Shown here one piece after another: positions 2,375 to 48,124 of a stretch of 64,000 nucleotides of DNA; position 1 is the first letter of the stretch, and the number at the start of each line of letters is the position of its first letter. The stretch is taken from assembly GCF_021869535.1 (NCBI RefSeq), contig NW_026262685.1:1488001-1552000 (forward strand), given 5' to 3'. This stretch comes from Mytilus californianus (taxonomy: Eukaryota). The position numbers were made by a program, and so were the translations under genes. Under the pieces are notes generated by a model that saw only the letters and a program-made list of their open reading frames with translations, did not search any database and was not told the origin of the DNA.

Positions 2375-3034
2375 GTTGGTATTCTTCAGGGAGAAATTAC
2401 TCAAGTTACTTTGATGTGAAATATTCCAAAATATTTTATTGCTATGTAACTTATATGTTAACTAGGCAGCACTAAAAATCACTAAATATTTGCAAAAATG
2501 AGAAAAAATTCTTGTTCTTACAACACATATTAATAGACAGTAACAGCAGAAATTTCTTCACCTTAAAAAGAAAAAAGTATTACAAAAATATTGAACTCCC
2601 AAGGTAAATTCAAAAAGGAGAATCCATAAAGCCTGACAAAACCAAATGCTCGACTACATCAAACAATAAAAGGAATGGAAAACTATCATATTTCTGACTT
2701 GGTACAGGCATTTTCTGGAGAAAATGGTGGGTGAAACCTGGTTTTATAGCTAGCTAAACCTCCCACTTGGAAAAGAATAATGTGAACACTGGTTAACAAG
2801 CAGTCAGAATTCAAAGATATTCATAGGAAAAAGGAAAACAGTCAAATTATATTTGTTATTAAAATCCTTCTGTCTTAGTAACAGTGAACAGTAAATGACA
2901 TTTATTGTTAAAATTTCCTAGCTGTCTCTATTCTCCATCTGTCTTAGTAAAAAAAAAACAGTACATATGTTAAAAGATTCACCAATTTTGCAGAAAATAC
3001 ATAATATTTGACCAGCTTTTATTTGTACTTGCAG

Positions 3035-3528
3035 GTTGTCGCCCTGGTTCTGTATCTCCAAGACAACACTCTACCACAGATAGTGCTATTTCTAGAGACA
3101 TCAGTGCTACAAAACCTATATTATCTACTTTTGGACATCCACAAAATGGTGGCATGTCCACATTTCCACGCAATCCACAGGGAAAAAATCAAATGTTTCA
3201 TAATGTTAGAGACCCTCATTATCATAATAACTATGAAGGTGCAAAAATACAAAGACTTCATTCAGATAATATTCATCCTCATCAACAATACATTGACATT
3301 CCACGAGTGCCATCGGGGGACCTGTTTCATGGAGATCTTCAAAGAGCTAACAGAAATAACAATTTGACTCGTTCATATGAAGATACTTTAAGTGACAGTT
3401 GTGTTTCTCCCCGAGACGAGGATGACAGAGCTACGACAACATCGGGAAGTTACACAGTAAACCCTGACGATCTTTGTACTGAAATTGATGAATTATTTTT
3501 TCGAGATCGAGGAGATACAGTAGTATAG
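3035..3528 (+). CDS. Protocadherin gene A, terminal coding exon ending ...DDRATTTSGSYTVNPDDLCTEIDELFFRDRGDTVV*
   Basis: Acceptor tgtacttgcag ends at 3034. Phase 1 joins the previous exon in frame (G+GT=Gly) and is in frame with ORF 3154-3528. The TTTSGSYT tail is one I recognise from molluscan protocadherins. Confidence 0.85.
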
Positions 3529-5140: not shown

Positions 5141-5605
5141 TTTGTATGCCCCCACTGTAGCGGAGGGGGCATTAAGTTTTACCCTTGTCCGTCTGTACGT
5201 CCATTCGTCCGTCCGTATGTCTGAACATACGTCTGTACGTCTCAAAATTGGTTTCCGTTCTCTAACTTAAGTTTGCCTCAAACAAATGATATGAAACTTA
5301 TACACAATGCTTATCACTACATAACATAAATCAAGTTTGAATTTTGGTGGCGTCACTTTTACCGTTCTAGAGTAATGCCCCTTTACAAATGGAAAAATTG
5401 CTGAATTTTTCGTTTCCATTCTCTAATTTAAGTTTGCCTTAACCAAATGTTATGAAACTTATACACAATGCTTATTACCACAAAACTCAAATCAGGTACG
5501 AATTTGGGTAGCGTGACTTTTACTGTTCTTGATTTATGTTCCTTTATAACGTTTTATGCAAGCGGGGCATCATCTGTGTCCCATGGAGACATTCCCCATT
5601 TATTT
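5141..5605 (+). mobile_element. Helentron-associated (HINE/DINE-1/pearl-like) non-autonomous element
   Basis: 5' hairpin ATGCCCCC(5146-5153)/GGGGGCAT(5165-5172), then a GTCY microsatellite and two ~161-bp cores (GTTTCC at 5251 and 5412). 3' subterminal GGGGCAT (5564-5570), short palindrome TGTGTCCCATGGAGACA and T-rich end. Confidence 0.8.
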
Positions 5606-5639
5606 TCACATTAAGATGAGAGCTATATTTCACAGAGAT

Positions 5640-8582
5640 TTTCAAGGTATATGTCGGAGAATTATGGGAGGTATGTGTCACATAGAGATATAGGGTATAT
5701 GTCACAAAGAGATGTGAGGTATATATTACAAAGAGATATAGGGTATATATTACAGAGAGATGCGTAAGGTATATGTCACAGGAATATATGGGGTATATGT
5801 CACAGAGAGATATAGTGTATATGTCACACAGAGATGTGGTGTATATGTCACAGAAATATGTAGGGATTATGTCACAAAAAGATGTGGGGTGTATGTTACA
5901 AAGAGAAGTGTGCAATGTGTCATAGAGGGATATGGAGTATATGTCACAGAGATTTGAGTAAATGTCACAAAGTGATATAAGGTTTATTCTACAGAGAGAT
6001 GGGATGAATATGTCACAGATATATGGACTATATCACTGAAAAATTTGAAGTAAGTGTAACAGAGAGATATGGATACAAGTCAGAGAGATATGATGAATAT
6101 GTCGCTGAAATGTGGGGACTATGTCATAGAGATGTAAGCTAAATGTCACAATTAGATGTGTTGAGTATATCACAAAGATGTGGGGTGTATGTTTCAGAGA
6201 GATGTGGGTTATATGTCACAGAAAGGTTTGGGGTATATGTTTCCGAGAGGTGTGGGTTATATGTCACAGAAAGGTTTGGGGTACATGTATATGTTTCAGA
6301 GAAGATTTGGTTATAGGCCAAAGAAATGTGGGTAATAGGTCACAGAGATGCAGGCTATATGTCACACAAATATGTTGGGTTATTTGTCACAGATAGGTTT
6401 GGGGTAAATGTCACATGAGAGATGTGGGTTATATGTTACAGAGAGGTTTGGGCTATACGTCACTGAGAGATGTTATATATATGTCACAGAGAGATGTGGA
6501 TTATATGTCACAGTTAAGGACGCTATATGTCACAAAGTGATGTGGGTTGTATGTCACATAGCAATGTTGGTTATATGTCACAGAGTAACATGGTTTATAT
6601 CTCACAGAGTAACGTGGTTTATATGTCACAGAGTAATGTGGGTTATATGTCACAGAGTAATGTGGGCTATATGTCACAAAGTGGTTGGGTAATATGTCAC
6701 AGAGTAATATGGGTTATATGTCACAGAGTAATGTGGGTTATATGTCACAGAGTAATGTGGGCTATATGTCACAAAGTGGTTGGGTAATATGTCACAGAGT
6801 AATATGGGTTATATGTCACAGAGTGATGTGGGTTATATGTCACAGAGTAATGTGTGCTGACTAAGATGGAGAGTTGTCTAATTGGCACTCATATCACATC
6901 TTCTTATATCTATATGTCACAAAGTGATTGGGTTATATGTCACAGAGTAATATGGATTATATTTCACAGAGTAATGTGGGTTATATGTCTCAGAGTAACG
7001 TGGGTTATATGACACAGAGTAACATGGGTTATATGTAACAGAGTGATGTGGGTTATATGTCACAGAATAATGTGGGTTATATGTCACAGAGTAACGTGGG
7101 TTATATTTCACAGAATAATGTGGGTTATATGTCCCAGAGATGTGTGTTATATGTCACAGAGATGTGGGTAATATGTCACAGAATAATGTGGGTTATATGT
7201 CACAGAGTAACGTGGGTTATATGTCACAGAGCAATGTGGGCTATATGTCACAAAGTGGTTGGGTAATATGTCACAGAGTAATATGGGTTATATGTCACAG
7301 AGTGATGTGGGTTATATGTCACAGAGTAATGTGTGCTGACTTGGATGGAGAGTTGTATCATTGGCACTCATACCACATCTTCTTATATCTATATGTCACA
7401 AAGTGATTGGGTTATATGTCACAGAGTAATATGGGTTATATGTCACAGAGTAATGTGGGTTATATGTCACAGAGTAATGTGGGCTATATGTCACAAAGTG
7501 GTTGGGTAATATGTCACAGAGTAATATGGGTTATATGTCACAGAGTGATGTGGGTTATATGTCACAGAGTGATGTGGGTTATATGTCACAGAGTAATGTG
7601 TGTTGACTTGAATGGAGAGTTGTCTAATTGGCACTCATACCACATCTTCTTATATCTATATGTCACAAAGTGATTGGGTTATATGTCACAGAGTAATATG
7701 GGTTATATGTAACAGAGTGATGTGGGTTATATGTCACAGAATAATGTGGGTTATATGTCACAGAGTAACGTGGGTTATATGTCACAGAATAATGTGGGTT
7801 ATATGTCCCAGAGATGTGGGTTATATGTCACAGATATGTGGGTTATATGTCACAGAATAATGTGGGTTATATGTCACAGAGTAACGTGGGTTATATGTCA
7901 CAGAGTAATGTGGGCTATATGTCACAAAGTGGTTGGGTAATATGTCACAGAGTAATATGGGTTATTTGTCACAGAGTGGTGTGGGTTATATGTCACAGAG
8001 TAATGTGTGCTGACTTGGATGGAGAGTTGTCTCATCGGCACTCATACCACATCTTCTTATATCTATATGTCACAAAGTGATTGGGTTATATGTCACAGAG
8101 TAATATGGGTTATATGACACAGAGTAATGTGGATTATATGTCTCAGAGTAACGAGGGTTATATGTCACAGAGTAACATGGGTTATATGTAACAGAGAAAT
8201 GTGGGTTATATGTCACAGAATAATGTGGGTTATATGTCACAGAGTAACGTGGGTTATATGTCACAGAATAATGTGGGTTATATGTCACAGAGATGTGGGT
8301 TATATGTCACAGAATAATGTGGGTTATATGTCACAGAGTAACGTGGGTTATATGTCACAGAATAATGTGGGTTATATGTACCAGAGTGATGTGGGTTATA
8401 TGTCACATAGAGATGTGGGTTATATGTACCACAGTGATGTGGGTTATATGTCACAGAGTGATGTGGGTTATATGTCACAGAGTAACGTGGGTTATATGTC
8501 ACAGAGTAACGTGGGTTATATGTCACAGAGATGTGTGTTATATGTCACAGAGATGTGGGGTATATCTCACAGAGAGATATGG
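5640..8582. repeat. 22-24 bp minisatellite (GTCACAGAGTAATGTGGGTTATAT) with higher-order structure
   Basis: About 2.9 kb of directly visible units, diverged on the left and homogeneous on the right. Four related non-unit inserts near 6865, 7344, 7611 and 8018. Confidence 0.95.
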
Positions 8583-28942: not shown

Positions 28943-31900
28943 CTGAAATTAAACAATAAAATGAACTTTAAATTGGCGATTTGTTTAAATGTATATCGAG
29001 CACAGTCATAGGTTCCTTTTGATTAGGTTTTAGTATAATGATACGGTATACCAAGGATTTGTATAGTGAGAAGGATTGGAATCTCGTGGACTATTTGCAT
29101 TGCCTGTATTGAAATAAGCTGCGTATGATGAGATTTTGCGAGATTTACCGTGATGCATCTCGTTAGTCGTTTTTCGTCCACCATTACAAGTTGAATTTAT
29201 GTCATTTCAAGATAAACTCGGCGTTTTGTAAGTATAATATAACAAAATTACATGATGTGATACTTTTAAGTGTTAAATTATGACAGTTCTGATTCAATAA
29301 ACAGTTTTTATCTTTACAAAACACATTGTCTGCATCTAAATATACTATGCATTTTATCTGTTGTTCATCGTAATAATCCCGCCCAAATAGGCGGTCCAAA
29401 CCACAACTTTAATCTCAATCTCCTCCTTCATAATAAGGATTTGTGTTCAGAAACTTGAATTATATGAAATAAATGTGTGTGGTGCGTGCATATTATAAAC
29501 TATATAGTGTAAGGAGCTTTCGTTGTTGTTACTTTAATGGTTATCTCAGACCAACCGTCAAAAATCGTCCCGCGTCAGTGCAAAAAAGGGTGGACTGATA
29601 AAATATCAATAAAGTGCCACAATCGGTCGATTTCAACACTAAAACGTAATTATATCAATTTATCATAGTTTATTTGTTGTACTTTCTAAAACATTTGGCA
29701 GTAAAATGATAACGTGTGATATTATCATATTTTCAAAATACCGCTACGGTTACTAGATGCATCCAAAAGTCGTTATTATGGGCGGGACCAAATTAACATA
29801 AATAAACTTCCTGTAGTCCCTCGAACGTGATGAAAAATGTTTACAGTAGAAAAAATAGTTTGCATCTGTCGTTTCATGGACATTTACACCAAAAGGTATT
29901 GCTTTTTCCTTTAGAATTGATATGAAAATGTACTGGGAAATTCCTTTATGCCTTCTAGGGTTTACAGAACCCTGCTTACGTTCACCACATCAACTGAGTA
30001 TATCATTATCATACAGTCATACTGCACATAGGCTACTGTCATAGGTGATAGCATATTTTGGCAGTAGTATAAAGTGAAAATATAGGGACACTATTAATTT
30101 ACAAGTTAAAGGCGTGTTCTTACTATCATATATTAAGACTGTCTATCTCTCCAACTTTTTGGTATACCTCAGGCCTGTACCAAAGATAACAGGAGATAGT
30201 TACATTTGTATATGTGTATATATGTGCTTAAAAGTGTGGGGGATAAGGGTACGATTTCAGTCCGACTAATTCAGTTAATGAAATAAAAAATATATATTGC
30301 CGTCTTCAGGATAAATTACAAGCGCTCGTCCCAGACCAGTATAATTTTTCTGAGGCTTAACTGCCCAAATGAATAAAAAGAGAAATTTTATGAAAGACTA
30401 TTTTTCAGGCTTTGTTGTCAAAAAGTGTTCTACAATACACAAAATCTCTAAATTAACACTCATAAACAACAAAAAAGAAAAGAACGGTCCATTCACATGT
30501 ACATGTATGGAGAATTTGAAAGTAAAATTAGGCACTTCATCAAAGAAATACCAAAATAGTCAAAAATTTTATGTTGTCATGGTCAAACATTTGATATTCT
30601 TGGGATGGCTACATGTCTACTAAAGTACATAATTAATCCTTGTTACCCCAATACAATCAACCGGTTATGTACTTGTATAGGATGCATAATGTGCCAATGC
30701 GGACTTTAAAAATCTGAACTTTTTCTGACCAGACTCCATATTCTGCATAAATTCATGTCTTGTATTTTATTATTTTTGTGATGTATTATGAACTGTGTTA
30801 TTTTGTTAATGTTCATATATATATATATATGTATACCATAAAACCCATGATAACTGGATTTAAATTTCAATAAAATACATATCCCAGCATTATTATAGTG
30901 AACATGTAAATTACATCTGTTTACATGGTTTAAACAGTAACAGATTATACATAACCCAGCAGTGACGAGTGCCCAATTATTCGTTTTTAAATTACTGCAA
31001 AATTCTCGAAATGTTATTTGATAAAATATAATTATTTAGCTTTTATATATGGACAGCTAGGAGAGAAGCTTACTCTTGATACATAAGTAATAAAATTTCA
31101 GTTACTGTGTATAATTGTTTAACATCATATTTGCATTCAGTTTTTTACTTTCAGATGTAAAAGATATTTTGTGTATTAATAGTACTTCTCTCTGAAGACA
31201 ATAGTTGGTTATGGCTGTGGATAATAATCAGGTAACTACATTATTAAAAATATAAAATAATACTGATACCAGAATTACTTTAAAATCATTATATTCAGAA
31301 TTTGTGCAAGAATCATACCAGTGTGCCACATCTCTTAATATTTTTTACAGAAATTCTTAGTTGAATTCTAGCCAGCTCTGACAGCTTTCAGCACTAGTAC
31401 TAGTACTGCCACAAAATGTAATTTTTAGATTCTTATTTGTTTTTTATTTGTAGTAGGCAGGTGTATTTTGTTTTACATGTAATGTTTTATTTTCTTTGCT
31501 TAGAAATTAAATGGATTAAAATTATAATTTTACAATATGGAAAATGTCAGGGAAACCCTAATTATATTTTATGTATTTTAGTCTTACAAAAAAAAAAATG
31601 TTTGTTATTTTCAGGATACCAAAGTTAAAGAAAGGAGATATGTTTCTTTGTGGTGAAAGTGCAAGAAATAACACCATATTCTGACTTACAAAATGATCAC
31701 TCATACTGCATGCAATACAGGGAAAGGCATCAAACCAAGCCTCTAGAAGACATACATTTGTAGAATGTATTTTCTATGATGTACACATCGCAGAGGATAC
31801 TTTATGTTCCAAAAAATCAAATACAAATTGTGTCAGCTCCTGTGACAAACTGAAGATGGAAGTTAACCAGAGTATGAAATCACCATTATCAATATGTAAA

Positions 31901-32194
31901 ATCCAACCAGTGACTATATATTTATTCAAATAGTGTCATGAATGGAATTAAAAAAGGACTTGGAAAATTAACATGTTTTAATATTGCTTTGTGTGTGTGA
32001 ATAAAATTTGTTAGCAAGAACAAACTTCTTTTATTACAAGACATCCAGAATACATGATGTCTTCATACATGTCATAGCAGGTACCAGCATTTCTGTGGTT
32101 GGGTGTTCCCAGATAGTTTAGTTTGTAACAATGTTCCATTTTTTGGTCTTTCATGCTTGGTTCATAAAGAATGTAAAAAAATATTTCATGTGCG

Positions 32195-32270
32195 TATAAA
32201 AATAAGGAGATGTGGTACGATTGCTATTAAGACAACTATCATGAGATCAAAGGACAAGGATGTAAACGAA
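32195..32270. mobile_element. Diverged family A copy nested in the P-like element
   Basis: ATAAAAATAAGGAGATGTGGTACGATTGCTATTAAGACAACT. Confidence 0.65.
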
Positions 32271-32689
32271 GACAGGTCAGTGTTCACTAAGATAGGTTTT
32301 CTAGGTACAAAGTAGGTACTTTTGAAAGTGGATAATCAATGGATTTATTGGGTCAATGGGATGAAGGTGGGGTGATGTGGGAATGAATATTTTAGCATGG
32401 TGAGAATTAGTAGAAGAAATAATGTTGCCCGTTCAAGATTGAAAATGAATAAGCTGCTGCATTTCTGCCTCACATTGAGCATGAAAAATTATTTAAAAAA
32501 GTGAAAATGAAGCTATGTGACATAAACAATCTGAGCAACAGCTAAAAATGAAATAATATTGACTATTTCATTTTGTGAAAAATCTGTCCAAGAGAAATCC
32601 TCCTGCCTTACCCCCTAAAAATGAAATGATTGTCCCCTTATACATGTATATGCTCTTAATGCTAATAAAAAATGTCAAATCTTTACCAA

Positions 32690-32865
32690 TATAAAAATAA
32701 GGAGATGTATGAATGCCAATGAGACAACTATCCATCAAATTCAAATGAAGTGGATGTAAGCAATTATAGGCAACTGTACAGCCTTCAACAACGAGAAAAA
32801 CCCATATTGTATAGTTGGCTCTAAAAGGCCACAGCGTGAAAAATGTGAAACAAATTATGAGTAGG
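32690..32865. mobile_element. Family A copy nested in the P-like element
   Basis: ATAAAAATAAGGAGATGTATGAATGCCAATGAGACAACTATCCATC...GCCTTCAACAACGAG...TAAAAGGCC. Confidence 0.75.
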
Positions 32866-34472
32866 GTGTATGACACAATAAGCAGATAACCCATCAAAGT
32901 TATTCGTAAAATGCTGTTAGTTGCTTGTGTTACTAATGTTTTTCACAAGGGAAATTTACTTTTACTTGCTATGGGTACAACCATTGATTTTAGGGTATGA
33001 ATGATACGTTCGTTTTTGAAGACCCTACATCAACTGTCAAGATGAAGAACAGGAATAAAAGCCATGTTCATTGATAATTTTCTATGTTTTCTATGTATTG
33101 TGTGAGATTTAGTCCCATGTACATGTACATTTACTCCATATCTTTTCAGTTTCTATTTTACTGTTGTTTATAATCATGAACTTATTTTTAACTTCCTGCC
33201 AGTCCTTCAATGAACTCAAACCTCTATAGTTCCAGTTTACACTCATGTATTTGCAGTTTGAACAGACGAGCATTCTTGAAAATCAATGAATTCATTTAAT
33301 TTCTCATTTGTTGCGGACCTTACATGTATATTGATTCTGTTAAATTTATTCATAACTTAACTATGATAAAATAAAACAACATACAGATAAAATTTGTATG
33401 GAGACTGACTATTCTTGAAGACTGTATGATTTCCTCTAACTGTCAATTATCTTGTGGTAGTTGGGTCAGTTTCATATACTAGACTACTACTAGAAGAAAG
33501 GACAAAGACAAGCTGCGAAAATAAATAATTGTTTTGACCTTCTCTTTGGGGTTATCTTAAACAGCTATTACTAGTATCATAAAGATGTGTTGGGCTACTC
33601 AAATTACGATCACAAGAAAAACAACAACAATGTCAACATAATTACGATAATTTTCGGCAACTGCCAAATGTAAACGACTATCAAAGTTTATTTTCCAGCT
33701 AAAGAGAGGTCCTCAATATGACATACTCAGAAGGAATCGTGATATCTTTGCGAATTAAAACAAAATATTGATCAAAGATGCTAAAACAAACAAAACCTAA
33801 CAACAAACAAGTCAGAAATGATTATCTTGCAATACACGCTGTTCAACCGGATATTTACTAACAGGCGCGTATAAATTTATAGTGGCGAGTACGCAACATC
33901 TCACGATACGCGAGAAGTGTCGATATACCGCGAGATTCCAATCCTTCTCACTATACAAATCCTTGGGTATACCAACATTTAATTCTAAATCTGTTGAAGT
34001 CGTACAAACAACGATACTAAGTGTTTAGACAAATTACAGGGTATGCATTTTAATCTCAGGTCCATAAAGAGATTTATTTGCGCCTGTATTGTTCCTTGCA
34101 CAAATATATTCAATGGACATTTATTTAATCTGGACTTTACTGTTTAAGAAACTTATAATCGATTTGAATTAAGAAAAGAAAGTTTATTTTTGTTATCTTT
34201 TACTTTTGATATATATTTATTCTGCAAGTTAAGGCTTTTATATTGATATAAAACGACTTTTAAAGGGAAAATATTCATGGTACAAATGTATGATATTCAA
34301 AGATCCATGAGTATTAAATATAAATAAGAATATCAAATGATTAAGGTGTTATTCTTTCTTCTGTAACAAAAGAATTGAATTAAAATTAAAAATTTAAATA
34401 ATTCTCTAGATCAAATTAAAAAAAACAACCTACCAGTTGCAATTAAACTATACATAACTATAACTGTATATA

Positions 34473-41688: not shown

Positions 41689-43007
41689 TTATGGGAATTG
41701 TTGGTGACCTTCTCCTGTGGCTTAAAGATTACTTGTCGAACAGAAAACAAAGGGTTGTCATAAACGGAGTAGAATCTTCCTGGGCGGATGTAAATGCTGG
41801 AGTACCCCAGGGTTCAATTCTTGGGCCCTTGTTGTTCCTCATTTATATTAATGACATTATTAACGAAGTAAGCTGTAAGATTAAACTATTCGCGGACGAT
41901 ACATGCATCTATGCTGTTGTAGATAATCCACTAGTTTCATCGATTTCTTTACACTACAACTTGCGTAAAATAAATAACTGGGCGGATAAATGGTTAGTAA
42001 ATTTTAATCCGTCTAAGACAGAATCCATTGTATTCTCACGAAAAAGCGAACCAGATTATCATCCACCTTTGAATATGAATGGCGTCATAATAAAAAGAGT
42101 TCAAACTCATAAGCACTTAGGATTAACTTTCTCGAGTGATGGAACATGGAATCATCACATCGAAAAAATTACATCAAAGACATTACCCCGACTAAACTTA
42201 CTGCGTCGCCTAAAATTTAGGCTACCCGATCAGTTTAGAAACATACACCAGTATAGAACTCGTTACGCAAATAATTTTCCATCAGTACCCTGTCGAACTA
42301 CTTATTATATGAATAGTTTCCTTCCATCAACAGTTCGACTTTGGAATAGCCTTCCCCTAGATATAAAAAATGCTGGTTCTATCGCTCCACTAAAAGCCTT
42401 TCTTAAGTTAAATCATTCTATACCAAATTATTATTATGCAGGCAGTAGACTAGGTCAGATATATCATGCCCGAATCCGTACCGAGAGCAGTAGTCTTAGA
42501 GATCACTTGTATCAAAAAAATTTGGAATCAGACCCATTTTGTAAATGTAAACAGATAGAAACCTCGGAACACTTCCTTCTAAACTGTCCCATTTATCATC
42601 GAACTCGTGAAGCCCTTTATGTTAACCTAGTTGGTACACTTAACATAGATACGTTACTTTATGGTGATCCGAACATTACAGATATAGACAATCAAAACAA
42701 CTTTCTTATTGTTCAAGACTATATATTGAAAACTAAGAGATTCACAAAATAATTCTTGTTGGCTCAACAACATGTCACCCAATATCAAAAAATACTATCT
42801 GCATTATATGTTAATTTCCATTACATTTGATTTCTTTTTCTATGATATTATGTTATATGATTGTACATTTTCTGTCCATTGTAATTAATTTTGCCGTTCA
42901 AAAGGAGAGGAATTTGTATAAGTGACTTGTCACTTGTTTTCCAATCCATGTATTGTATTGATGTACATATTTATTTATCTGTTTCTAAATAAAATATTGT
43001 TTACACT
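41689..43007 (+). mobile_element. 5'-truncated non-LTR retrotransposon (CR1/L2 group) with partial RT, C-terminal CCHC-type motif and 3' UTR
   Basis: GVPQGSILGPLLFLIYINDI, KLFADDT, HKHLGLTF and C-terminal CKCKQIETSEHFLLNCP; AATAAA near 42988; 11-bp TSD AATTATAACAA at 41678-41688 and 43008-43018. Confidence 0.92.
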
Positions 43008-43530
43008 AATTATAACAAATTTCCTTTACCAAATCCTATTTGTAAAATATTTTATGTCGCACGTTAAACTTCTGTACACCATTATATTCACACCTAATTC
43101 AAAATGTTTATATTTAATGATACAAACATGACCGTAACAACTTTTTAATTTGTGAAAAATTCTTTTTAACAGTCAGAATATAAGTGCATTGAAATTCAGC
43201 TACAATTGACTGAACCCACAGTAAGAAATAACGGGATCTTCTTAAAATATTTTTCACTATTAATGCAAATCTACTTTCTAACATGACATTTAATTTATTG
43301 GAAAAGATTAATTCTAACCCAATATTAACTGTTTTTAAGAGGTTTATGTAAAATGACATCATTGCTGACTTCACAATGAATCAATTTTTGACAACTAATT
43401 TAAACATATGAAGTAAAGAAATCATTCTGATTGCCCACAGTGTTCTTACATTAATTTTCATAAATCAATTTTACAACAAATATCATCTTTGGACTCAGTG
43501 AAAAAAACTCAATCAAAGTATAAACTAAGG

Positions 43531-43568
43531 CAAGGATTTGTATAGTGAGAACACTATACAAATCCTTG
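43531..43568. mobile_element. 38-bp remnant of the P-like family (21 bp left TIR + 17 bp right TIR)
   Basis: CAAGGATTTGTATAGTGAGAA + CACTATACAAATCCTTG; 7-bp TSD ACTAAGG at 43524-43530 and 43569-43575. Confidence 0.85.
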
Positions 43569-43914
43569 ACTAAGGTCATGGTATGTAAAACTGTGACGAA
43601 GATTAAGAGTGAGCAAAATCAACAGAATGAAATCTGTTGTTTAAGTTTACACTTTCTAAGGGAAGTCTAGATCATTCTGTGTAAGATCTTTTGAGATCAA
43701 CAAAGATGATTAGTATTACCTAAAAAGTTTATGACAATACTTAAGGAAAAGTACTGTAGCACGACTGCTTAAAAGTCATTTCTGGACTGGAAAAAATCTT
43801 CTCTTACAAGCTACTCTGTGATATCACTTACCAATCAGCGAATCAATTCATCCTGAAATATGGTTTTGACAAGCGTGGTATGCATTTTAACAACAAAACA
43901 TAGGCTTCACTTAC

Positions 43915-44045
43915 CATAGAGTATGGGTTTTGCTCATTGTTGAAGTTTGTACGGCACCCTATAGATGCTTATCATCCTCTTCCTTTCGTCTCTGGTGGAT
44001 AGTTGTCTCATTGGCAAATATACAAAATCTCTTTTATTTTATATA
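43915..44045. mobile_element. Family A copy
   Basis: GTATGGGTTTTGCTCATTGTTGAAG...GTCTCTGGTGGATAGTTGTCTCATTGGCAA. Confidence 0.75.
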
Positions 44046-47000
44046 CATATATGATGTTGTTTTCTAAATCAATATTTTGTGGGGATTGATATAATACTCA
44101 AGACAACATTAAATTAGGGAATCATTCAAAATGGCCCTTGTGAGCTTCAGAAAATAAACACACTTTTATTGATTGTGTTATCCATTAAGGGAGGTTTTAT
44201 CTGCTTTTCTTAAACTTTTTCTGTTTGGTTGTCCTGTTTGCATGTAACTGAAGTTTCAACAACAAAAAAATAGGAAATAATCTAGACAAAGGTTCTCGTT
44301 TTATTCAACAAAAATCATAAAATTCTAGGATTTTTTTTTTGGAAGTCTGACAGTCTTTTTTAGAACTTGCAGGGACTTTTGTTCCCTGGCAATAATCTAA
44401 AAATGCCATTTGACGTCAACAATCTCCCACTCATATCATCATAATACCAAGAAATAGGTTATGGTTTTAATAATTTGTTTCTGGAAATCAAATTTCTGTT
44501 ATATAATATAGAAAGCTAAATATAAGTTTCATATTTCAACAAAAGAATTTTGTAGATTTTTATCAATGTTTGAAAAAAAATCTTTATCCTTACACATTAA
44601 AACTGATCTCTAAATAATGAGTTTTCTATTTGCTTCATTTCCACTTTCAGGCATTCTGTATCATTACATAAAATGTTAACTGTTGTACCATATAATTACA
44701 GTAAAATAACATATTATGCAAACTTTTTATATCCTGTGTAAGCTGTGCATTTAAGGAAACAATATATCACCAACACTAAGCCCAAGTCAACACAGTCAAA
44801 CAATACATACTAATTTAATGGCAGATTTTGTTCCTTATTATGTATAATATATAGTCTCAAAACATGATCTCATCTTGTATCAATTTTCACCTAGGTACTT
44901 AGTACTATAATTTATCTGATACTGAATCAGTCCTTTCCTCTAATTTTACCGCTGGAAGCATTGTTCGCCATTTAATTACGTTTTTCTTTGACCAAATTTG
45001 TGTTTATCCACTGTCAATATCTAAGACTCTGGACTCGTCAACATAAACATGTCATACGATAGTCTATGTCATGCCTCTTATTATCCTAACCTCGTCAAAT
45101 CAACCGGCAACATTTTTAATTTCTCTAAAATTATTTCATCTTCTGAACCATGAAAAAGATTTCATGACACAGAACTACAAAGTAATACGCCTTTAACCAG
45201 ATATTGTCCATATGATATGGATGATGTCCAACAAAACATTTTCAATTTGTAGATTTTTTTCATCTGATTCAAGTCAATGAAATGGACATTAGCGGTCTAC
45301 GATCAGAATGTTACAAATGAACGACAAATTTCACATTTAAATGGCGAGATCCTTCTGTACTGGGACATTACTTTTATACCAGAGATGCAATCTTTTAACA
45401 AATGACCACAACATTAAGATAATTAATTTCAATATGACTCAAGTACAAACGATTTGTTTCCTCGTCTCTAGTCTTTGGTGAAATTAGACATATGTAGGTG
45501 TGGAAATAAGTAAAATTCAATCTGATTAACATTCAGTAAAATATCTTGTATTCACTTACTGATAAAATAATACTCTAAATTAAAATATTGGTCCAAGGTA
45601 CTATCTTATGTCATTAAGTCACTACCATCTATTTTATGTACTTCTAAAACAATCAAAAACACAAATGCATTTTTTCCATTCTGTCTAGAGTATCTAAAGT
45701 ATCATTATAAATGTATGTAGTTCTTTGGTTTAACAAATGTCAAAACTTATCTTGGGAAGTTAAAAGATTGACAAAATATCTTAGAGAGAACAAATCTATT
45801 TCCTTTTGGACAGAAGCTTAAACATTGAAATGATAACCTTCTCAAACTTGACTTCCCCGTGTCAACATTGAAACAGGAGACAGGGAAACCAAAGGTCCCC
45901 TAAATATCTAACTTCAGATCAATGCATACATCAACATTTTTTTCTGCATTTTTAGGTACAAGAAATCAATTTCTGAGTAAAGATATTGTATTTTTATTTA
46001 TCATTTATGACAGTTTTAAACATGACTATTTCAGTCATTATTACAGGATTGTCAGCTACATGTGACAATTGAAGAATATTAATTAATTATTCAAACAAGG
46101 TGAATATAAAATGTTCCACCGATTCAATACTTCCAATATTTTTGATTGACGGAATCAGCACAGAGACGAAGGCATGACTTAATCAATTGAATGTTTTACA
46201 CAATGCAACTTTCAAATATACCTTTAAGATCATGTTATCGACAATTTAAACATTTGCAATTGTCAATAAACAGCATGAAAAGTAAATTAAAAATTTTAAT
46301 AATAAATAATACACATAAAATCTACTTTAGAAACTTAAAAATGTTAAAAGATAAGCCAAGTCTGAATTCATTTAAACAAGAAATAATATTATACGGAACA
46401 TAATATACTTTCTGTTCTACCAATAAAATTTAAAACTTATTTGAATGTCAAGTGACAAGTATTTTAATTGTAAGCAAGACTATATTTCAATTAAAAATAA
46501 TTACAACTATAATTACTTAAAGTTCTATTTTGTTGTTTATTTTCAAAAATTCTTTAACAATATTAGAGGTGATATTCAATGTAGCAAACTGAATCAATTT
46601 CATATTTTTGTATTAATCAATATCAAGTCTGGCATCTGTTAAAGTTGTATCAAGTACAGAACAAATTGTTAGTGCAATAAATATTCTTAGGACATTAAAT
46701 TACATATATTTTTCAAAATCAATCAAGATGTACTAAACTTAGTGTCTATCCACCAAGAGTGGTCCTGCATGAATATTAATGATATATTTGCAAGGGAATG
46801 TTCAGCAAACAATAATAAATTTAAGGGATCATCCATACATGCCAACCATTTCCAAAGTATGCAAAGTGCACTCCATTGCGAAGTAGAAAATTCAACAACA
46901 ACTTTTATCCAGCTTATTTACTGTATTAGTCCAGAAATATTTAGGTTTTTCTATAAGTTTATATATTATTCTATTGAAAATGATTTTTGTCGGAGGGAGG

Positions 47001-47085
47001 GCTTTAAAAGAAGTGTGTTTTGCACGCTTGGAAAATGGTTGACAACTATGGATGGACGACCCCTAAATAAATATAAATATGAAAA

Positions 47086-47135
47086 CTAGGATTTGTATAG
47101 TATTGTACTATAGTATTGTACTATACAAATCCTTG
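47086..47135. mobile_element. 50-bp remnant of the P-like family (16 + 16 bp TIR ends with 18-bp filler)
   Basis: CTAGGATTTGTATAGT + ATTGTACTATAGTATTGT + ACTATACAAATCCTTG; flanks ATGAAAA / ATGAAAG (6/7 match). Confidence 0.8.
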
Positions 47136-48124
47136 ATGAAAGCAGTTTTCATACTTATGTTAAAATAGGACTGCTACTAAATTATCAAAAACTTTTATCA
47201 ACTTTGACTGTTTGAATGGGCTACTTTTCCATGGTCAACGTTTGGTAACTTTAAAAGAGGATAAAGAGATAATACCTGTTATGATAAAAGTACTGATAGT
47301 ACTGTTGACTTAGTACCTTTACTTAGCATCTTGTTACTAATCCTTAGTTAATATTTCTTTATATTATCCACAGGATTATTCACCAATTATCTACTTCAGC
47401 CCTAGTCATCTTGACATTAAATAGATTTATAAACAAGCCATCTTGTACTGATAAGTTGTCTAAGAACAAATGCAAACTTTTTTAAATCTTAAATTTGTTT
47501 TCTGTCTTATTAGGGTGTTGATTTTACTGCACACTTTTATAACCTTGTTTACTGTAAACATTAGGGATTACTGCCTTAGTTGAGTATTGAGGTTCTTTTA
47601 AACAGTATTTTGAGTTTCATAAACTGGTGGTGACATTGATTTTAGTAAATATCATGCCATTTAATTAAGCTTTAAATTTCTTTTGTAAATTCAAGTAAAA
47701 AATAAGAAATAAAACCCTTTCATAATAAAAATGTTATATTTTCCCTTATTGTATTATTCTTGTGATGTGCTTCTATAATTATTGGTCTCATAAAGAGATA
47801 TACTAAATGATGTTATTTGGTAATCTTAACTAGGTGCATGGGTTGCAATCTGCATTTTGTGATTTTCTGTCAGCTTTAATGTTTGAGTAAAAAAACAAAA
47901 TCCCTATACATTGTAATTGCCTTTAATCCATAACTTTAGGATCAGATCAAACCCCTCAATAAATCATTTATAACTAATCATAATGTATACTACAAAACAC
48001 AGTGCCAATAATATATGTACAAAGCCTGGTAAATGTTGGGAATCTGCATTGGACTAAATTTACAAGTTTATGTATAAAACTAAATAAAACATGCATTGGG
48101 ATAAATTTACATGTTTATTTATAA

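Follow-up and report, generated by a model that had tools for sequence, protein, structure and literature searches.

The 52-base site at positions 43524-43575 of a 64,000-nucleotide stretch of Mytilus californianus DNA (the window, that is, the whole stretch analysed here) is, judging from its sequence, very probably the germline excision footprint of a cut-and-paste element with P-type geometry. An earlier reading made from the letters of the window alone (the sequence-only reading) had proposed such a footprint, and we now find this proposal supported by the long stubs bounded by TSDs, by a large population of similar scars with varied junctions and by an empty site in related taxa. Taken alone, the locus is ordinary, an old and neutral-looking scar in unique sequence, and it is the family-wide scar record rather than this single locus that holds the interest. 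The approximately 1,700 TSD-bounded remnants of the family may constitute a natural genome-scale record of P-type repair, in which the transposase would cut the non-transferred strand 20 nt inside the element, a proposal that we consider evenly poised between right and wrong.

Anatomy of the site and its empty counterparts

The site consists of a perfect 7-bp direct repeat around 21 + 17 nt of the TIR ends of a 4.9-kb element located in the same window (Table 1). This element was used as the reference for the stubs and is not necessarily the copy that was lost from 43524-43575. Compared with it, the 21 + 17 split is unambiguous, as base 22 on the left is expected to be G and was found to be C, and base 18 counted from the right is expected to be T and was found to be A. 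The anatomy described in the sequence-only reading, a perfect 7-bp TSD enclosing stubs of 21 and 17 nt identical to the ends of the 4.9-kb element, was confirmed to the base. Its explanation of the 21-nt side by gap-filling synthesis is unsupported, since the left stub may be explained equally well as a 20-nt stub followed by one filler A that matches TIR base 21, the reading of the site that we prefer.

Table 1. Positions of the site, of the reference element and of related features in the window.
Feature	Positions	Strand	Basis
TSD, left copy, ACTAAGG	43524-43530	+	read from sequence
Left TIR stub, 21 nt, CAAGGATTTGTATAGTGAGAA	43531-43551	+	identical to window 29052-29072
Right TIR stub, 17 nt, CACTATACAAATCCTTG	43552-43568	+	identical to window 33949-33965
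TSD, right copy, ACTAAGG	43569-43575	+	read from sequence
4.9-kb non-autonomous family member	29052-33965	+	TIR, TSD and ORF inspection
Segment homologous to the 5' side of P-like transposase gene	31504-31919	+	64-72% DNA identity
Segment homologous to the 3' side of P-like transposase gene	31974-32140	+	64-72% DNA identity
Another short remnant of the family, with 16-nt stubs on both sides of an 18-nt filler	47079-47142	+	15-mer scan

The terminal 15-mer of the TIR has 6 matches in the 64-kb window when up to 2 mismatches are allowed, as compared with 0.31 expected from shuffles, none of which gave 6 copies. These matches correspond to both ends of the 4.9-kb element, to the site itself and to a short remnant whose stub part lies at 47086-47135. 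The TSD of this second remnant reads ATGAAAA on one side and ATGAAAG on the other, and its filler holds TATAGTATTGTAC duplicated in tandem. Its left stub shows one point change (CTAGG).

The footprint at 43524-43575 sits in a single-copy stretch between two very high-copy repeats. At window positions 42900-43030 the summed contig depth reaches hundreds to thousands, and at 43910-44043 up to hundreds of thousands, in both cases for organisms A, B and E and with far lower values in organism C.

Contigs from four public runs were aligned to window positions 42900-44200 at 85% likeness. One contig from organism B (X7; 126 nt, with a shorter side of 27 nt) and one from organism C (X9; 236 nt, with a shorter side of 33 nt) join position 43523 to position 43569, skipping 45 nt and having 7 nt in common. 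Both joints carry one ACTAAGG, and the flanks are single-copy in those runs. Alleles with a single ACTAAGG, for which the sequence-only reading had suggested a search, are indeed present in organisms B and C, and these single low-depth contigs are good, if not final, evidence for what would be the state before insertion, or an allele of that state. In the aligned runs, neither an allele nor an orthologue holding a full element at 43524-43575 was seen, and we therefore infer, rather than observe, excision at this position. In the run of organism A (X3), no contig was listed across 43524-43575, and the 38-mer made up of the two stubs was swamped by repeats. Variant junctions pile up on this 38-mer in the runs of organisms A, B and E, which indicates that the family and its scars are also present in these organisms.

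The 4.9-kb element and its relation to P-like transposase genes

The TIR family is named by its terminus, CAAGGATTTGTATAG..., and the TIR end is also written CAAGGATTTGTATAGTRAGAAGG. In the 4.9-kb element, the TIRs are 35 bp long, start with CAAGGATTTGTATAGTGAGAAGG and occupy 29052-29086 and 33931-33965, and they are flanked by the 7-bp TSD GGTATAC at 29045-29051 and 33966-33972. Many copies of this family, of approximately 5 kb and with 93-97% identity, are present in the genome. The copy in the window had been called intact, a description that we could not uphold, as its longest ORF is of 109 aa and it holds no Pfam-recognisable coding piece. More specifically, ten stop-to-stop pieces of the element and a 153-aa ORF of its sister copies had no match in Pfam, and six P-like ORFs compared by tblastn with 12 family copies gave no match at E <= 0.01. 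A search of the genome with Pfam PF12017 gave no match, but its controls were silent as well, so that this result is uninformative.

P-like transposase genes are present in the genome, with at least 51 TNP-like RNaseH_N matches listed. Open frames of 893 and 862 aa among these genes combine RNaseH_N, a GTP-binding insertion domain and RNaseH_C. The 893-aa frame, with TNP-like RNaseH_N, GTP-binding insertion and RNaseH_C, runs uninterrupted over positions 199-2877 of locus L137 (G000:C165:50972432-50975899), and the 862-aa frame of locus L145 is its sister; both are possibly intact P-like transposase genes.

Two interior segments of the 4.9-kb element are homologous to genes of this kind (Table 1). 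One of them (element positions 2453-2868) corresponds to the 5' side of the L137/L143/L145/L148 gene type, coding start included, and the other (element positions 2923-3089) to the 3' side of L143. Both matches have 64-72% identity and E values of 1e-13 to 1e-15 and occur in the same order and orientation, and a catalytic body of approximately 2.7 kb is missing between them. A translated piece of the element (31629-31760) contains DLQNDHSYCM, to be compared with DLHNDHSYCM in the L137 ORF. Such a pattern results from an internal deletion in a related P-like element, and the 4.9-kb element would be a derivative of this kind.

This homology pattern, together with the 7-bp TSD and the long stubs, makes the family a likely, though not a proven, member of the P superfamily. 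TSDs range from 7 to 9 bp in this superfamily (PMC3698922), and they measure 7 bp at the 4.9-kb element, at 43524-43575 and at 96 loci sampled from the genome. As no coding piece was recognised by Pfam and no match was obtained by tblastn, the link to the superfamily rests on DNA homology of 64-72% over a few hundred bases. No autonomous copy with the TIR of this family was found in the genome among the matches listed, and no pair formed by one of the 51 listed TNP-like RNaseH matches and one of the listed long TIR ends lay 10 kb or less apart. When the 3.4-kb loci that hold 20 of the P-like genes were scanned for the TIR, the one candidate was GAAGGATTTGTATTG, an internal look-alike with 2 mismatches in an intron-like stretch of one family, which we judged to be a chance match and not a TIR.

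One family copy (G000:C2:23142194-23144714) contains a 121-bp unit, corresponding to element positions 102-222, in approximately 20 tandem copies that are 95-98% identical; here, a small satellite is arising from a subterminal repeat. One 5-kb family copy is split by an insertion of approximately 4.7 kb, a nested retroelement, in which a 339-aa frame on the minus strand (L029, G000:C143:30197535-30203804, positions 5254-6270) carries a retroviral-type integrase core (rve, E 6e-14).

Scars across the genome and the length of their stubs

Over the whole genome, 666 loci carry at least 15 nt of each TIR at a distance of 0-30 nt, as compared with 0 for a reversed control pattern. A second search, anchored on one 15-mer end, showed that most family ends in the genome fall in short remnants. 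Every locus listed on the first 50-105 Mb of contig C1 (L001-L015 and L032-L136) was taken as a sample, in which a partner stub and a matching 7-bp TSD were found within 140 nt for 144 of 173 anchored ends. The 144 paired ends collapse to 96 distinct loci, each with a different 7-bp TSD. The TSDs are perfect at 66 of these loci and the remainder have 1-2 differences, with mismatches at TSD and terminal-hexamer positions counted jointly.

The scars span 24-44 bp and their interior is not conserved, with approximately 70 different junction sequences over the 96 loci. Filler is absent at 51 of the 96, microhomology of 1-5 nt is found at 32, and the rest have fillers of 1-32 nt. Junctions that recur are almost all filler-free, the exception being a 40-mer with a 2-nt filler at two sites, and the commonest junction is a 32-mer, present at 10 of the 96 loci. 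Some fillers are visibly copied from the adjacent stub, for example at L038 (G000:C1:44623522-44623579) and L063 (G000:C1:100683881-100683933), where a second partial stub copy (CAAGGATTTGTATAGT or CTAGGATTTGTATAGT) lies inside the junction. From their sequence, these compound junctions look like insertions templated from the other tail.

The exact 38-mer of the site occurs at 4 places in the genome, which correspond to 2 independent sites, three of the four copies having common flanks and the TSD TATTAAC inside a repeat of 0.45-1 kb with 98-99% identity. The sequence-only reading had held that an identical 38-mer at many loci with different TSDs would speak against a scar; with 2 independent sites for the 38-mer, and with the diversity of junctions in the C1 sample, no conserved and amplified unit of the MITE type was found. 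On contig C1, the remnants L082/L099/L124, L130/L131, L096/L103 and L101/L117 recur with identical flanks and TSDs. Recurrent remnants of this kind are passengers that were copied in other repeats once the scar existed, and raw locus counts therefore slightly overstate the number of independent excisions.

Truncated ends largely outnumber long ones. Exact TIR ends of at least 23 nt are 142 in the whole genome, against 3,430 of at least 16 nt, and approximately 1,700 pairs of truncated ends compare with at most about 70 pairs of long ends. The deletion derivatives form a continuum of 46-1517 bp. More than 95% of the recognisable family ends are excision remnants or deletion derivatives, and the TIR family looks largely spent.

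The counts of exact TIR prefixes decrease in the whole genome from 3430 (at least 16 nt) to 2923 (17 nt), 1983 (18 nt), 1350 (19 nt) and 1171 (20 nt), and then to 262 (at least 21 nt) and 142 (at least 23 nt). Ends terminating at exactly nt 16, 17, 18, 19 and 20 number 507, 940, 633, 179 and 909, respectively, and a further 120 terminate at nt 21-22. By far the largest step is between nt 20 and nt 21, and 78% of the ends that reach nt 20 terminate there. The unconditioned partner stubs of the C1 sample behave similarly, with 24, 28, 20, 8, 24 and 1 stubs of 16, 17, 18, 19, 20 and 21 nt and 3 of at least 25 nt; 74% of them fall at 16-21 nt, and the other 26% form a tail below 16 nt, down to 3-15 nt. 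Retained lengths are thus concentrated at 16-20 nt and do not show the broad distribution that, according to the sequence-only reading, would have argued against excision.

The apparent peak at 17 nt is an artefact, because position 17 of the TIR is G in one variant of the family and A in the other, and because a 16-nt stub joined to the ACTATAC of its partner reads TAGTA. Ends with G at position 17 terminate at nt 17, 18, 19, 20 and 21 in 4, 13, 6, 24 and 2 cases, with 3 long ends, showing a peak at 20 and no drop at 17. In the A variant, the two tails can pair through the palindromic TA at nt 16-17, which explains the common 32-mer. The earlier claim that the 17-nt cleavage geometry of Drosophila P acts in this mussel is not borne out by these data, in which there is no edge at 17 and the stub limit is 20 nt.

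The sequence that follows a 20-nt stub is mostly the partner stub itself, and the edge at nt 20 therefore does not come from parental elements that diverge past this position. The 21-22 nt class is approximately what chance extension of 20-nt stubs would give. In the internal-deletion derivatives L086 (97 bp) and L098 (79 bp), one breakpoint each lies exactly after nt 20. This agrees with a 20-nt tail that was not extended and an opposite end that was partly resynthesised before joining, an event of the kind described in Drosophila as one-sided synthesis and subsequent end joining (PMC2895639). The distribution also has a second mode at 16-18 nt, with a dip at 19, which is not predicted by a 20-nt tail with random trimming and is only partly explained, by the TA microhomology at nt 16-17 of the A variant. 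In Drosophila, products of end joining only keep at most a 17-nt tail (PMC2895639, Table 1), so that the limit of 20 nt observed here suggests a 20-nt tail; by this analogy, the edge has about an even chance of marking the 5' cut position of the transposase. As described for P-type footprints, the remnants are made of the outer TIR, on each side no longer than one staggered-cut length, and are joined with microhomology, with a short insert or with neither. Stubs of 16-20 nt at thousands of ends point to a long staggered cleavage that would leave 3' TIR tails on the donor.

Proposed mechanism, alternatives and known systems

In the proposed mechanism, an element of the CAAGGATTTGTATAG... family, with 35-bp TIRs, a 7-bp TSD and an interior related to P-like (THAP9/TNP-like) transposase genes, would have inserted at a single ACTAAGG, duplicating the target to 7 + 7 bp. 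During excision the transposase, which we infer to be of the P superfamily, would have made the 3' cut at the element boundary and the 5' cut deep in the TIR, as in Drosophila P, leaving each flank with a long 3' single-stranded TIR tail. The tails would then have been united by end joining with no homologous template, the left one whole and the right one trimmed by 3 nt, with one base between them (or with 21 nt kept on the left side). By analogy, the joining pathway may resemble the alternative (polymerase-theta type) end joining of Drosophila.

P transposase leaves 17-nt 3' tails (PMC7776569), and this 17-nt stagger is called unique to P transposase in passages of PMC7776569 and PMC10983969. 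The junctions of Drosophila P{wa} have a TSD at either end, up to 17 nt next to each TSD, and microhomology or a templated insert in the middle, and synthesis on one side followed by end joining gives longer derivatives (PMC2895639). The mussel scars are similar to Drosophila P footprints in that both TSD copies are kept with at most one tail length of each TIR, in that the joins have zero to a few nt of microhomology or short, often locally templated inserts, and in that longer derivatives occur where repair synthesis precedes joining (PMC2895639, PMC7776569). They differ from them by a TSD of 7 bp instead of 8, by a TIR of 35 bp instead of 31 with unrelated sequence, and by a stub limit of 20 nt instead of 17; moreover, the mussel scars are natural and fixed in a bivalve germline, whereas those of Drosophila are laboratory events. 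The long stagger of its cut is what sets P transposition apart, and the Drosophila enzyme is the only one for which it has been measured. If the 20-nt edge does mark the cut, no other cut-and-paste transposase would have a longer inferred stagger, and there would for the first time be evidence that the stagger varies among P-superfamily enzymes.

As 17 nt is the only stagger measured in the superfamily (PMC7776569), the scars could also have been produced by a 17-nt cut as in Drosophila P, the longer stubs being due to a few bases of repair synthesis on the sister or the homologue. The right stub of the site is exactly 17 nt, the commonest 32-mer can be read as 17 + 17 with a TA tip overlap in the A-variant TIR, and exactly 17 is the largest single class genome-wide. 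This class, however, is almost entirely made of TAGTA followed by CTATAC, which is equally 16 + 16, and the ends with G at position 17 show no drop there. Copying of a template over variable lengths would, in addition, not halt so often at exactly +3 nt, where 909 ends terminate as compared with 262 that go further, and we consider a 17-nt cut unlikely. It is quite unlikely, in turn, that the footprint is real and was left by a non-P transposon (e.g., Mutator-like or unclassified) cutting deep in its TIR. Among the matches listed, copies of this TIR were not seen to enclose a transposase gene, and a TSD of 7 bp is by itself not specific to P; against this, the interior of the element matches TNP-like genes at their 5' coding start and at their 3' flank, in order and orientation, with the catalytic body missing. 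Long TIR stubs have, to our knowledge, been described for P elements only. It also counts against a non-P transposon that hAT, Transib and MULE elements are cut via hairpins on flanking DNA (PMC5499845, in part).

The short remnants might themselves be mobile as TIR-TIR palindromes of 32-40 bp, in which case 43524-43575 would never have held a long element. Each short locus has its own 7-bp TSD, identical sequences are found at different sites (the 32-mer, the 38-mer and a 39-mer with GTAAGTCTTAC, the latter at several sites), and the empty site in related taxa is compatible with an insert of whatever length. We nevertheless regard mobile palindromes as very improbable, considering that the variation among the junctions of the 96 loci is central, with only scattered point changes in the partner stubs, and that recurrent forms are almost all filler-free joins, complex fillers being unique save for the 40-mer with a 2-nt filler. 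Founder copies would not be expected to show a hard edge at 20 nt together with a continuum down to stubs of 3-15 nt, nor the continuum of larger deletion derivatives. It also speaks against mobile palindromes that mobility of Drosophila P requires internal transposase-binding sites beyond the outer TIR. Loss of the interior independently of any transposase, by replication slippage or recombination between inverted repeats, is extremely improbable: inverted repeats can promote deletions, and nothing more specific speaks for it, whereas arms 4.9 kb apart are poor substrates and the deletion end points were not seen to be scattered evenly over the 35-bp TIR and past it. Such a process would not yield a sharp 20-nt limit on both arms, and short fillers and microhomologies of 0-2 nt at about a thousand independent sites would be unexpected.

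Excision by a P-type transposase, which we prefer, can also be compared with other elements. 1360/Hoppel and Galileo have a 7-bp TSD and P-like transposase kinship in common with the mussel family (PMC3698922), and in the literature on these two elements we found no cleavage geometry or genome-wide footprint census. Zebrafish Pdre2 is, like the putative mussel element, a non-insect P-like element, and is excised by its own THAP9-type transposase, zfTHAP9, according to passages of PMC10983969. In these passages its excision is accompanied by larger flanking deletions, in contrast with the tidy TSD-bounded stubs of the mussel family, and the main-text passages searched (PMC10983969) give no stagger length. 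For bivalves, our literature search returned no paper describing P-type footprints or P-like families. The points in which the mussel family departs from the Drosophila P system are the host, the 7-bp TSD, the 20-nt limit and the presence of approximately 3,400 truncated ends against 142 long ones. A mollusc family with well over a thousand readable scars offers an independent, population-scale read-out of P cut geometry. The scars would also serve as a catalogue of how the bivalve germline joins long non-complementary 3' tails, covering trimming, microhomology of 1-2 nt and short templated inserts.

Like MITEs, the mussel scars are short, TIR-bounded, TSD-flanked and numerous; unlike them, they have no conserved interior, a junction that differs at almost every locus and a 20-nt stub limit. 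Palindromes of 24-44 bp such as these are easily mistaken for MITEs or regulatory hairpins in mussel genome annotation.

The TSDs of the loci sampled on contig C1 show a palindromic preference, NTNNNAN: of 69 TSDs, 68% have T at position 2 and 74% have A at position 6. This suggests symmetric target recognition by a dimeric enzyme.
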